Below, piece after piece: positions 2,264 through 24,345 of a stretch of 64,000 bases of DNA (position 1 is the first letter of the stretch; the number at the start of each line of letters is the position of its first letter). The stretch is taken from assembly GCA_965112155.1 (NCBI GenBank), contig OZ218107.1. One strand, written 5' to 3'. The DNA comes from Podarcis liolepis (taxonomy: Eukaryota). Position numbers and translations under genes: made by a program. The notes under the pieces were generated by a model, which made no database searches, was not told where the DNA came from, and saw nothing but the letters and a program-made list of their open reading frames with translations.

Positions 2264-2352
2264 TTGGAGTTTTCACCACAGACTTTATGTTGCTATGGCA
2301 AACAGTTATGCACAATCCCACGAGATGCTACATATTACAGTTACCAAAACAG
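2264..2352 (+). CDS. EP300: EP300 exon 19 equivalent, N-terminal half of RING
   Basis: tttcag|TTG GAG TTT TCA...CAA AAC AG|gtaag; LEFSPQTLCCYGKQLCTIPRDATYYSYQN; 89 nt; not shown in this frame in the ORF track. Confidence 0.97.
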
Positions 2353-4463
2353 GTAAGAAAATGCTTGGGCACAACATTGCACCTGCTGTGAAAAATTATA
2401 TTACATATAGGCAGGCATGCAGTTATATTTATAGCATACTCAGCAGATTACTTCCCATGCAAGCCAAGTGCCTTGTTGCATCAATTGACTTTTTCTTCCT
2501 GTTTCAGAAATTAGGATGTTAATATAAACTCTCCATATGCTTTAGATAAGTTCAAAGCTTCTGCAGTAAAGCCATCATTTTTTCCTATGTATGAAACAGT
2601 GCACAGAAAAGCATGCATGTTTGCATCTTGAGTTCACTGCATTTAACATTCAGTCTTGTCCTAAGGGAGACATATTTCCTGTTTTAGATCACAGTTATTT
2701 CAACCAAAGCTGTAGTTGTAAAGCTGTGTTTTGTTTGAGCTGCGTGAAAAGCAGGGTGCCTGCAAGGTCAGAGAGGGGCTGACTTGACTCTGCCATGGCC
2801 TCTTACAGTCTCTCACTCTCAGCTAGAATTTCTATGCTAGTAGCACTCCTGTGTGTGTGCTTGGGATCTCTTAACTATTGAGGCATAACTGTCAAGTGTT
2901 CCTGAGTATGTACTTTTGTTTAAGAAGGTAAATCTTGCACTGCATCAGACCAAGATTTACCTGGTCCGGCATCTTTTATGGGAATTTCAATAAACCAGCA
3001 ACTTCTCTGTACTCCACTGGACCTGCAGCCTTCAGTTTGTTCTCGATAGCCCTTTTCTGAAGTGGAAATTAACTGAGGAGTGAACTCTGGAGTTGTTTGA
3101 TTAAATAAGCATCACCGTGCATCTTAATTTTACCACCTGCACCTGCATGATGATGGCAGTCTTTCTGAAGACTTGCTTTCTGTGATAGCACGGGTCTATG
3201 TTCTGCTTTGGGGTCGGAAAACATCTGATAGGAAAAACTGTGTTTGGAGCTCTTCTAAGGGAGGAAAGAAAACTGAGAACACAACTTTTTCACGTTTTTT
3301 GTCAGGAGTATTGCTGCAAATCATGCTTTGGGGGGGGGTTGCTGAAGTAGACAACTAGTTCTTTAACAAATCTAAAGCTAAGCTTTCTATAACTTTACAG
3401 CTTCATGCCATAAGTCATTTTTATCACAAATGCCAACTTGAGTAAAGAAATCTTCATATGTATACATATGAGCTGGGATCCAAAGAACTGCTGTAGGTGT
3501 GTACATGGGCTAGGGCATTGCTACTGGATTTTTTTACCTTTAATCAGCAGACTGTCATGCCATATCACAGCTTTTGAAATTAAGAGGAGTTTCAAAAACA
3601 ATGTGGAATGGAAGGTTGCTGTCCAAAACATGCAAGGCAAAGCCCCCCCCCCAAGCAGATAACACTAAGTGGTTCTTTGGACACTGGTCTTTTGAATGTC
3701 CAAATCAATGTTTGTCATTGTATCAGTGTAATAAATAAACTAACCTGTTATAGATAGGAAACATAGGTGGTGAAGAAGTGATCCGTTCCTTAGCAATTAC
3801 ATTTCCTCTAGTGTTGGTTTTGCTTTGCTTTATAATACTGTCACAGTTTTGTTTTTTGTTTTTGTTTCTTTTTGTTGTATGTTTGCACTCAAATTAACTT
3901 GCTTAGCAATGGAAAGGCTGCAGTTTCTGTGCACTCTTGCGGGTAAAAAAACATCTTGAGTAAAGCATTCAACATTAATTTAGATGAAGATGGAATCCTT
4001 TTAATATGTCAATTATACATCAATTTGGAGGCATGGAACATCAGTACGTCACATATTAAGAACATACATATGCATGGCTGATTGTCAGATGCCTTAAAGC
4101 ACCTGTCATTTTGGCAGATCATGAACAATTGCATAGAAATTGTTTTGGGGATGGTTACTGCTGCTTTAAACAGATGTTGCAAACAAAAAATGCTTTGAGG
4201 GGAAGGACTGGCCTGTCAACATTTGAGCATTCTCAAGATGGATTGTTTTCACCCCTTTCCAGCCCTCTCCTGGCAGATGTTCTTGTGAAAAGAGTTGCTA
4301 CCCTGATGCAGATGTCAGAGCAGCAATTGCTCTTACCCTTTCTTCATTTTGATTCTCTGCTTTATTGTAGCATTGATTATTGAAATGAGGAGGGCATGGG
4401 CATACTAAAATGGAATACTCTTTTTATTTGCTATAATTTGCTGCTTGTGATCCCATTTGAGAG

Positions 4464-4812
4464 ATTTAATGCTAATCTGTGCTTTGCCTTGGCTTTCTGC
4501 TTTGTGTTGTCCTGTCTTGCTTCTGTGTTTTTGTTTTTCGTCCTGCAAATCCCTATTTCTTTGTTCGTGTGTGTGTGTTGTTTTTTTATTTCTCCTTCAT
4601 GCTTGTCGTTGTCTGCACTTGGCTTTGATTGCAAAAAAACCAACCCAAACAAAAAAACAAAACCAAACACAAACTCTGGGTCCCATAAATCTTCATCATT
4701 GAATGTCCCTGTCGCCGTTGATGACCTGCTCTCTGCTCCCGCCCCCCTCCTTGGCCTGCTGTGATTGGTGGCTCCGTTGCTTGGCTTGGGCTGTGTTGTG
4801 TGGACGGAACAG
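4464..4812 (+). promoter_or_regulatory. Extended AG-exclusion zone with candidate distant branch point (GCTAAT 4471-4476) and long pyrimidine/UG-rich tract
   Basis: No AG dinucleotide from 4464 to 4810; CTAAT branch motif at the 5' edge followed by a U-rich tract. Confidence 0.8.
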
Positions 4813-4842
4813 TTCACCCAAATATGGCCTTCTTGCCGACAG
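4813..4842 (+). CDS. EP300: Putative alternative 30-nt 5' extension of EP300 exon 20 (adds SSPKYGLLAD)
   Basis: First AG after the AG-free zone (aacag|T TCA CCC AAA TAT GGC CTT CTT GCC GAC AG); in frame with exons 19 and 20, no stop. Confidence 0.7.
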
Positions 4843-4923
4843 GTATCATTTCTGTGAGAAGTGCTTCAATGAAATCCAAGGAGAGAGCGTTTCTTTGGGG
4901 GACGACCCATCACAGCCTCAAAC
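4843..4923 (+). CDS. EP300: EP300 exon 20 equivalent, C-terminal half of RING
   Basis: gacag|G TAT CAT TTC...CAA AC|gtgagt; RYHFCEKCFNEIQGESVSLGDDPSQPQT; 81 nt. Confidence 0.97.
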
Positions 4924-5348
4924 GTGAGTAGCTATCTCCTTTCTAATTATTTTTAAATTTCTTACAACATTTATCATAGCATTAGTCAATCTCATACTCT
5001 AAATACTATTAAACAATTTACATCAAATTTATGGTAAAATTCCTTATTTAATGCTGAGGCCTTGTGCAATTATGGGAGGAACAGAGGACAGGAATATTAT
5101 TTGAAAACAAGACAAATCTTATGTTTCAGAATGAGCTTTAGCTTTTAAAACACTTTCATATTTTGGTGAGAATATGAAAAACCACTTTTGAAAAGTAGAA
5201 GCATTATTCCAGTTTATATGTTAGATTTAATAAAGACCTAATGTTTAAGAATTCCAGTCCCACCTGAGCCTGCAAATTTTTTTGTTGCTTCTGCTTGTAG
5301 AAAAGAGACTTCACAGCTTGCTTTAACTTTTAACTATTTTGTGCATGT

Positions 5349-5376
5349 GCACACACACACACACACACACACACAC
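5349..5376. repeat. (CA)n microsatellite
   Basis: Directly visible CA run. Confidence 0.9.
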
Positions 5377-5668
5377 CATGACTAGCTTTAACCTGTTGAG
5401 CAGGAGATCCAGTAAAGAATTGTTCAGGCAGGTACCTAACTGAAAGCAGGCCTAAATTTGAAAACACGGGTGACAGATTTTCCTGCTCAAAATAGGGTTA
5501 TGTTGGAGCAGAGTGTTCATAGGAATTGTTTGCTGGAGGTTGCAACCATGTTCTGACACTTAGAATATTTATGTGCCTTTACATATTGGCCATATTTGAA
5601 CGCCACATCCTCTTCTCCTTAGGCACAGCTACAAGGATGAGATGAGAACTGCATGTTGTCCAAACCCT

Positions 5669-22104: not shown

Positions 22105-24345
22105 GATTATGACTTATGTATCACCTGCTATAACTCTAAAAACCATGAGCACAAGATGGAGAAACTGGGCCTTGGTATTGACGATGAAAGCAACAACCAA
22201 CAGACAGCCACTACGCAGAGTCCTGGTGATTCACGTCGCCTGAGCATCCAGCGCTGCATCCAGTCTTTGGTCCATGCCTGCCAGTGCCGCAATGCCAACT
22301 GCTCATTGCCGTCTTGTCAGAAGATGAAGAGGGTCGTCCAGCACACCAAAGGTTGCAAGCGCAAAACCAATGGAGGGTGCCCAATTTGCAAGCAGCTCAT
22401 TGCTCTTTGCTGCTACCATGCTAAGCACTGCCAGGAGAACAAGTGCCCAGTGCCCTTTTGCCTCAACATCAAACACAAGCTTCGTCAGCAGCAGCTTCAG
22501 CACCGCCTGCAGCAGGCCCAGATGCTCCGGAGGAGGGTGGCAAGCATGCAGAGGACCGGCATAGTAGGCCAGCAGCAAGGGTTGCCCTCGCCAACACCAG
22601 CCACACCAACAACTCCGACAGGCCAGCAGCCACCAACTCCTCAGACCCCACAGCCGCAGCCTCCACCCCAGCATGCCTCGCAGCCACAACCCGTACCTCC
22701 CAATAACATGCCTCCATATAGCATGTCAAGAACTCAGCCTCCTGGTGCTGTCTCCCAAGGCAAGGCAGGTGGCCAGGTAACTCCTCCAACAACTCCTCAG
22801 GCTACTCAGCCACCTATGCCGGGGCCCCCTGCAGCTGCTGTGGAAATAGCCATGCAGATCCAGCGAGTAGCTGACCACCAGCGGCAGATGGCCCATCCAA
22901 TTTTCCAGAGGCCAATTCAACACCAGATGCCCCAGATGAATCAAATACAGCCTATGAGTGTAACACCCCCTCAGATGGCCAGAGGTCCCGGGGGCCATAT
23001 AGATCAAGGGATGGGACCATCAGGAATTCAGCAGCAGCCCGCATGGGCCCAGGGAGGCTTGCCTCAACCTCAGCAGCTGCAGCCAGGAATGCAGAGACCA
23101 ATGATGTCAATGGGCCAGGCTGGGCAGCAGATGAGTATGTCACCGCAGCAGCCAGGAATGGGTCAGGTCCCTGGCGCTGCTCCGTCAAAGCAAAGCTCTG
23201 TGCCCCAGGCAGCCTTACAAAACCTGCTGCGGACTCTCAGGTCCCCCAGCTCTCCCATGCAGCAGCAGCAGGTGCTTAACATCCTGCACTCCAACCCTCA
23301 GCTGTTAGCTGCTTTCATCAAGCAGAGGGCTGCCAAGTATGTTGGGAACCAGAATCCACAGGGCATGCCGGGACAGCCCGGAATGCCTCAAGGGCAACCA
23401 GGGATGCAGCAGCAGGCCATGCCAGGACAGCAAGGTGTGCATCCCAATCAAGGCATGCAAAATATGAATCCGATGCAAGCAGGCGTCCAGAGGCCCAGCA
23501 TGCCCCAGCAGTCGCCACCCCAGCAGCCACCACCCCAGCAGGCCATGGGCGGGATGAATCCTCAGGCACAGCAAATGAACATGAATCCTGCAGCAACCAT
23601 GTCTCCCCAGTTTCGGGAAATCCTAATGAGACGGCAGCTGATGGAGCAGCAGCGTCAGGGAGCAGGACCAGGGCTGGGGCCTGGCATGGCCAACCATAAT
23701 CAGTTCCAGCAGCCCCAGGGAGTTGGGTACTCTCAGCAGCAGCAGCAGCAGCAGCAACAACAACAACAGCAGCGGATGCAGCATCACATGCAGCAAATGC
23801 AACAAGGGAATATGGGACAAATGAGCCAGCTTCCACAAGCAATGAGTGCAGAGACGGGATCCAGTTTGCAGCAGGTGTTCCAGCAGAGGCTACTTCAGCA
23901 GCAGATGGGATCACCAGCTCAGCCCAATCCTATGAGTCCCCAACAGCACATGCTCCCTAGCCAGGCCCAGTCCCCACACTTACAAGGCCAGCAGATTCCG
24001 TCATCGCTCACCAATCAAGTGCGTTCTCCACAGCCTGTCCCTTCACCACGTCCCCAGTCCCAGCCACCCCACTCCAGTCCGTCCCCTAGGATGCAGCCAC
24101 AACCTTCTCCACATCACGTCTCCCCGCAGACCAGCTCCCCTCATCCAGGACTGGTAGCTGCCCAGGCTAACCCCATGGATCAAGGGCACTTTGCCAGCCC
24201 GGACCAGAGTGCAATGCTTTCTCAGCTTGCTAGCAATCCAGGCATGGCAGGCCTCCATGGTGCAAGTGCCACAGAACTGGGACTCGGCTCAGATAATTCA
24301 GACTTGAATTCAAACCTTTCACAGAGTACACTAGACATACACTAA
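22105..24345 (+). CDS. EP300: EP300 terminal exon coding part (ZZ end, TAZ2, Q/P-rich region, NCBD)
   Basis: tttag|GAT TAT GAC TTA TGT; ends [16 protein letters not shown], the p300-type C-terminus rather than CBP. Confidence 0.98.

Follow-up and report, generated by a model that had tools for sequence, protein, structure and literature searches.

A 347-nt AG-free zone and a candidate distant branch point upstream of tandem acceptors at EP300 exon 20

The EP300 locus and its AG-free intronic zone

We analysed a 64,000-nt stretch of the Podarcis liolepis genome (contig OZ218107.1 of assembly GCA_965112155.1; hereafter the window, or W where loci are compared), whose plus strand contains the 3' half of EP300, beginning with the bromodomain exons and ending with a stop codon at 24345, followed by L3MBTL2. 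Among the proteins compared, the closest match to the last EP300 exon of the window is a snake p300 (89%). Our subject is the intron that separates two RING-domain exons, all features of which are given here on the plus strand. It is preceded by the equivalent of EP300 exon 19 (2264..2353; LEFSPQTLCCYGKQLCTIPRDATYYSYQN plus AG, read as LEFSPQ...YYSYQN), identified by translation and by tblastn against full-length p300, with a 5' splice site GTAAGA evident in the sequence from 2354. From there the intron extends 2,489 nt to the canonical acceptor (2354..4842, the acceptor AG itself at 4841..4842), and is followed by exon 20 (4843..4923; RYHFCEKCFNEIQGESVSLGDDPSQPQT), 81 nt encoding 27 residues of the RING domain and bounded by GTGAGT from 4924 (GT at 4924-25). 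Splicing to the canonical acceptor gives ..YQN|RYHFCEKC.., the form of most annotated p300 proteins. Exon 20 of human EP300 encodes 27 amino acids of the RING domain, and its loss or skipping alone causes a severe Rubinstein-Taybi-like syndrome (PMC11790522).

The last part of this intron contains a zone of 347 nt without a single AG (4464..4810). AG dinucleotides stand at 4460 and 4462-63 immediately before it and the next occurs only at 4811-12, exactly as an earlier note on this DNA had claimed. The AG that ends the zone lies 30 nt 5' of the canonical acceptor, in frame with it, and is a candidate upstream acceptor (4811..4812). The AG-to-AG gap of 349 nt is the longest among 4,536 such gaps in the window, the runner-up measuring 115 nt. 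The probability of about 2e-10 that the earlier note attached to the zone was too optimistic, as the note itself suspected. At 37% the zone is poor in purines, in part it resembles a microsatellite, and TA and CG are depleted as well, and for this reason we shuffled bases within short blocks so as to hold local composition. In 25-nt blocks 7.6 AG are expected and the probability of finding none is 5e-5; in 10-nt blocks the expectation is 4.7 AG and the probability 2-3e-3. The zone thus remains unlikely by chance, at P from 5e-5 to 3e-3. It holds 7 GA, the mirror dinucleotide, and 37 CT against no AG, and the AG count directly upstream is normal (20 in the 350 nt of 4114-4463).

Among the remaining 13 EP300 acceptors of the window, AG-free zones measure 17-62 nt and the adjacent tracts are 50-91% pyrimidine. 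Weak adjacent tracts had been remarked upon for both exon 20 acceptors, and the figures bear this out: the 22 nt before 4812 are 36% pyrimidine, the lowest value among the 15 acceptors, and the tract before 4842 is 59% pyrimidine and 27% T. The TTTAAT/GCTAAT pair that was said to open the zone is found at 4465-4476, and the U/UG-rich tract of about 130 nt said to follow it is likewise present (4477..4606; 55% T, 20% G, 20% C, 5% A). Within the pair lies the heptamer TGCTAAT (4470..4476), a candidate distal branch site with its branch A at 4475, 337 nt from G4812 and 367 nt from G4842. The 40 nt that follow the heptamer in the window are 75% pyrimidine and 50% T.

Conservation of the zone and of its opening element

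The DNA comparison drew on six metagenome contigs that represent five independent loci of uncertain species. L001 is EP300 of a distant sauropsid, with coding exons 88-90% identical to those of the window and non-mammalian residues. A single sample supplied L002 and L005, two EP300-type genes of fish type, of which L005 matches teleost ep300. L003 and L004, with one base of difference in 7,956, are the same CREBBP-type locus (..FTEIQGENVTL..); L004 and L001 come from the same sample. L006 is a divergent homologue. A search of the six contigs for Alu markers gave no match, and none of the six is taken for human.

An AG lies at exactly -30 from the canonical acceptor in all six. The earlier note had proposed an alignment of orthologous introns as a check on AG depletion, and this comparison places the AG-free zone in the same position in all five independent loci, including the CREBBP paralogue. 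The AG-free stretch measures 347 nt in L001, at least 351 nt in L002 (where the contig ends), 246 nt in L003, 414 nt in L005 and 252 nt in L006; in each locus whose contig holds it complete, no AG gap is longer, and the second-longest reaches about a third to a half of its length. The five independent zones together contain no AG and 36 GA, against whole-locus AG/GA ratios of 1.03-1.24 (binomial P = 1.5e-11). Fisher combination of 10-nt-block shuffles over the five lineages gives 3e-11, and 3e-7 when it is restricted to the zone interiors so that the shared end elements are excluded. Each zone holds 26-43 CT, and the depletion of AG is thus strand-specific. The boundary of the depletion is sharp: stretches of equal length 5' of the heptamer contain 17 AG in W, 19 in L001, 10 in L003 and 13 in L006.

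By blastn, the window and L001 match across 4209-4929 at 83% identity, and at about 90% from 4354 on. Their introns can be aligned only over the last ~630 nt (83-90% identity), with about 45% identity elsewhere, and the alignable part includes a conserved block of normal AG content 5' of the zone (4209..4463). Over the zone itself, which is about 90% identical between the two, 34 substitutions would be expected to have produced about 3.3 new AG; one is seen, 3 nt from the acceptor. The same search of the window against L002, L003, L005 and L006 found no similarity upstream of 4752. The zone interiors of W, L002, L003, L005 and L006 are unalignable by blastn, yet all of them are without AG. These comparisons of sequence support the view that the AG-free zone is a selected and deeply conserved feature.

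Some variation around these elements may be recorded here. The conserved block upstream of the zone includes a TACTAAA (A4408), which reads TGCTAAA in L001. The extra AG of L001 gives its upstream acceptor the NAGNAG-like form gAGcAG (5070-5074 of that contig), and in L006 a further AG, in frame, occurs at -21 in the stretch between the two acceptors (1409-1411).

Two branch adenosines had been put forward in the earlier note, of which 4475 (in GCTAAT) can be retained, its heptamer being invariant, and 4469 (in TTTAAT) cannot, as it is not conserved beyond L001. TGCTAAT is present without change in W, L001, L003/L004, L005 and L006, which are all the loci whose 5' zone edge is available. In a simple U2-pairing scan, a crude count, the heptamer scores top in W and L001 and near the top elsewhere; within 100 nt of 4812 in the window the same crude scoring finds no heptamer above threshold and a moderate GTGAT (A4766). 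TGCTAAT is separated from the upstream acceptor by 337 nt in W, 337 nt in L001, 236 nt in L003/L004, 338 nt in L005 and 259 nt in L006. In W, L001 and L003 the branch A follows the last upstream AG by 12-13 nt, and in L005 by 79 nt. In L006 the last AG falls 4 nt after the branch A, and would not be usable because it is too close to it (PMC1431707, PMC5378181).

The heptamer also opens a near-identical element of about 45 nt (4470..4515; TGCTAATCTGTGCTTTGCCTTGGCTTTCTGC..TGTGTTGTC) that is common to EP300 and CREBBP, being found in W, L001, L003/L004 and L005; L006 keeps only the heptamer and a U-rich tract. In ORF fragments from seven further species or paralogues the element is read as ..ANLCFALA.. 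or ..LICALP.., and there it precedes the 30-nt stretch between the tandem acceptors by about 100-440 nt. This spread led us to reject a length constraint as the meaning of the recurring distance of 337, 337 and 338 nt in W, L001 and L005. The near-equality itself stands although the alignment of W with L001 has 14 gapped columns and the L005 interior is unalignable (4475-4812; L001:4737-5074; L005:130-468).

Several other features lie within the zone. A GU-rich block (4563..4592) is followed by an A/C-rich block (4630..4675) that has mid-zone counterparts in L001, L002 and L005 and a shorter one in L003. A conserved box, TGTGATTGGTGGCTC (4759..4773), occurs 44-59 nt before the upstream acceptor in W, L001, L002, L003 and L005. 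RTTGG boxes (reverse CCAAT) are repeated in the fish-type zones, four in L002 (120-330) and two in L005 (241-415). The GU-rich and A/C-rich blocks had been suggested to form a stem that modulates access to the tract. They do pair in the minimum-energy fold, yet the stability of that fold is ordinary (z = 0.15, with 103 of 200 shuffles folding at least as well), and we do not uphold the stem. RNA structure from branch site to acceptor showed no unusual stability in any of the six loci (z from -1.2 to +1.9). A predicted hairpin enclosing the 4812 AG in W and L001 was rejected as evidence (z = -1.41; alignment fold of just -1.9 kcal/mol). Rfam searches over 2354-4443 and 4523-5400 returned no match near the gathering score; the minus-strand mir-3613 match at 4564-4674, with 18.6 bits against a gathering score of 91, is a GU/AC low-complexity hairpin and was taken as chance.

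In several species the frame of exon 20 runs on without a stop over most of the zone, or all of it, for up to 146 codons (4457-4927; P0009-P0016). We rejected a coding reading of the zone: the peptides are not conserved, and in the window the frame is interrupted, once, by a TGA at 4700-4702. The open frame looks like a by-product of the depletion of AG, TA and GA, and gene callers applied to raw contigs still report such ORFs.

Tandem acceptors and a ten-residue RING insert

Use of the upstream AG would extend exon 20 by 30 nt (4813..4842), which encode SSPKYGLLAD plus AG and insert ten residues between N and R of ..YQN|RYHFC... The extension is identical at 27-29 of its 30 nt between the window and each of L001, L002, L003 and L005, with the differences mostly at third codon positions. 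At three synonymous positions no variation is seen: A4816 in the Ser codon TCA, the T's of CTT CTT, and, in AAA, the A whose change to G would create an AG. The first five nucleotides, TTCAC (4813..4817), constitute a candidate proximal branch site, with A4816 placed 26 nt before G4842 and 4 nt after G4812; the motif is invariant in five vertebrate loci even though its A, at the third position of a Ser codon, could change without altering the residue. These few sequences are suggestive of an extension that doubles as coding sequence and as branch site and pyrimidine tract of the canonical acceptor.

The insert is found in annotated proteins of many vertebrates. A word search with an ORF across the exon recovered three vertebrate ORF fragments, all with SSPKYGL[LIV]AD. 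When the extension and exon were searched together against 1.8 billion cluster representatives, about 20 vertebrate genomic ORFs with the extension in frame came up, as well as invertebrate full-length CBP proteins with a homologous segment. Annotated full-length p300 and CBP proteins read YQN-SSPK[YF]GL[LIV]A[DN]-RYHFC, and at least 30 vertebrate protein clusters include an annotated long form, with long p300 in many teleosts, two frogs, the snake Pseudonaja, polar bear and tamandua, and long CBP in skates, sharks, a sea turtle and a bat. In Myripristis murdjan a short entry (P0027) and a long one (P0161) derive from one gene and are identical except for the 10-aa insert, with the frame kept. 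To judge from these annotated proteins, all of them annotation-pipeline models, acceptors of the 4812 type are used.

Counterpart inserts of 10 or 11 residues are annotated in insect CBP, for example YQN-SLKAYGLGSD-RYTFC in beetles and SLKEYGVASN in a Drosophila (P0025, P0259-P0283); other invertebrate models have no insert (P0075, P0079). The tandem-acceptor event, or at least its coding segment, may be as old as the bilaterians. Two vertebrate-type genomic ORFs, P0021 and P0023, run straight into RYHFCEKC with no SSPKYG before it (..GCFCR|YHFC.. and ..LFFCR|YHFC..), and may be paralogues that lost the upstream acceptor.

A probable distant branch point and its alternatives

Distant-branch-point exons are recognised by a long AG-free zone whose 5' end carries a branch site and a pyrimidine tract; its length is counted back from the acceptor as far as the first AG that lies beyond -12 (PMC1431707). 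Under that definition acceptor 4812 has a zone of 349 nt and belongs to the class, and the canonical 4842, with a zone of 30 nt, does not. The zone of 4812 also has a branch consensus and tract at its 5' end, normal AG content upstream, and conservation in orthologues. We consider it reasonably likely that the zone marks a branch point some 340 nt upstream that serves the first of two alternative acceptors. U2 snRNP would pair with TGCTAAT (branch A 4475), aided by the U/UG-rich tract that follows, and after the first catalytic step the spliceosome would pick the first downstream AG. Because that AG is 4812, the product would be long p300 with SSPKYGLLAD in its RING domain, and AG would be excluded from 4475-4811 because any AG there would be used instead. 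The canonical 4842 would most likely be served by the proximal TTCAC (A4816) together with the short CCTTCTTGCC tract in the extension; A4816 could not use 4812 because the site lies downstream of that AG. Branch-point choice would then decide the isoform. We infer that A4475 and A4816 are both used as branch points and that the choice between them sets the isoform ratio.

The claim of the earlier note that exon 20 is spliced through a branch point about 340 nt upstream therefore survives as to the kind of architecture, with A4475 as the best candidate, and has to be amended as to the acceptor, since the zone ends at 4812 and not at 4842. As the zone of the canonical acceptor is only 30 nt, a distal branch point would directly explain the long (+10 aa) form, and use of 4842 would require a proximal branch point or else that the first AG be passed over. 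It is conceivable that one distal branch point serves both AGs and that 4812 is bypassed, but the predicted hairpin around the 4812 AG is weak evidence for this. The tandem AGs of Drosophila Sxl exon 3, where U2AF and SPF45 take part in a switch, offer a parallel of two nearby AGs with different roles in recognition and catalysis; the parallel is an analogy for first-AG bypass only, and gene, spacing and factors differ.

Closer relatives of the proposed arrangement are found among known distant branch points. The AG-free zones of PTBP1 exon 11 and of its paralogue nPTB measure 381 and 438 nt, respectively (Gooding et al. 2006, PMC1431707). EP300 resembles them in its long zone, in the branch consensus and U-rich tract at its 5' end, in the normal AG content upstream, in conservation across both orthologues and a paralogue, and in its link to alternative splicing. 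It differs in that its zone ends at an alternative acceptor 30 nt 5' of the annotated one, in that the alternatives are two tandem acceptors and not the skipping of an exon or a pair of mutually exclusive exons, and in that the EP300 branch point is a predicted one. With alpha-tropomyosin exon 2/3 and alpha-actinin (cited in PMC1431707) EP300 shares a far-upstream branch point, choice of the first AG and regulatory sequence in between; in those genes, however, the branch points enforce mutually exclusive exons and were mapped experimentally, whereas the EP300 distance is larger (337 nt) and is deduced. Across the genome, in human cell lines, a downstream AG tends to be used where the branch point lies beyond the upstream AG or too near to it (Taggart et al. 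2017, PMC5378181). TTCAC, whose A4816 lies 4 nt after G4812, would have a role of this sort, although that study, a report of a genome-wide association, makes no mention of either EP300 or CREBBP, and the coupling of distal and proximal branch points in EP300 is our own proposal.

A number of observations weigh against this interpretation. The tract after TGCTAAT holds many G and is not a clean pyrimidine tract. The TTCAC motif has only a moderate branch-site score and is missing from L006. The CREBBP-type zone, taken alone under the strictest null, is marginal (P = 0.065). Most annotated tetrapod p300 entries are of the short form, yet the first-AG rule predicts 4812; the distal branch point may thus serve a minor isoform only, or there may be several branch points. 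Near-identity over ~45 nt is also more than a branch site needs, and the element must therefore do something else too.

The last of these points is accommodated by a different reading, unlikely in our judgement, in which the long U/UG-, C- and A/C-rich interval has no fixed distal branch point and binds splicing regulators, for example of the PTB, CELF, MBNL or hnRNP L type, with branching at scattered weak sites. AG would then be excluded as a cryptic-acceptor risk, and TGCTAAT would be the most upstream weak site or a protein-binding site. Besides the conservation of the ~45-nt element beyond branch-site need, four YGCY motifs within that element are consistent with such binding, as are the recurrence of A/C-rich blocks and a TGATTGG box in several loci and the presence of other branch-like heptamers inside some zones; most introns employ several branch points (PMC5959240). 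These internal branch-like candidates are, however, not conserved between loci, and the 5' edge of the zone falls within 13 nt of TGCTAAT in four of the five lineages, including L006 with its heptamer alone.

It is also conceivable, but improbable, that the zone is a by-product of composition and conservation, a purine-poor low-complexity element that lacks AG by chance or descent in an intron with proximal branch points only. The composition described above is of the right kind for this, a published AG-free zone of 369 nt arose from a repeat (PMC1431707), and the zone is common to W and L001 by descent. At the same composition, however, the zones contain 36 GA and no AG; the depletion is confined to one strand, CT being plentiful; and five zones with unalignable interiors are all AG-free. 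Neither acceptor, moreover, has a good adjacent pyrimidine tract. This reading is disfavoured. Least probable of all, and very much so, is that the interval is a DNA-level element, an intronic enhancer or alternative promoter with repeated ATTGG (reverse CCAAT) in which the lack of AG is incidental: four RTTGG boxes in the L002 zone, two in that of L005 and one TGATTGG box in all EP300 and CREBBP loci agree with it, but the window has just one such box, and transcription-factor sites do not predict a strand- and dinucleotide-specific depletion that ends exactly at an acceptor.

The assignment of the EP300 exon 20 intron to the distant-branch-point type of architecture, with A4475 as the best candidate, thus appears right in kind, and the long form is apparently unstudied; our literature search found no paper on the EP300 zone, an EP300 distal branch point or the 10-aa peptide, nor any lariat data. 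The proposed arrangement comprises an intronic interval of 250-400 nt from which selection strictly excludes AG and at whose head stands a near-identical element common to both paralogues. Intronic variants far beyond the usual diagnostic window, such as a new AG in the zone or changes to TGCTAAT, could disturb splicing of the exon. Algorithms that measure zones from annotated acceptors only miss cases with an upstream alternative acceptor, and that of PMC1431707, applied to 4842, would miss this exon. The locus would also provide a clean natural case of how distal and proximal branch points share two acceptors, and the conserved +10-aa RING isoform is probably regulated.

In the core structure of p300 the RING domain restrains the acetyltransferase site. 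It is tempting to speculate, though we regard it as a tentative proposal with the odds against it, that TGCTAAT, the ~45-nt element and the AG-free zone form one module, kept since before the split of EP300 and CREBBP, that switches branch point and with it a 10-residue loop beside the zinc-binding cysteines, tuning p300/CBP activity by tissue or state. If this is true, the activity of two of the most studied chromatin regulators, p300 and CBP, would be tuned by a splicing switch acting through an isoform that goes without mention in the p300/CBP literature searched.

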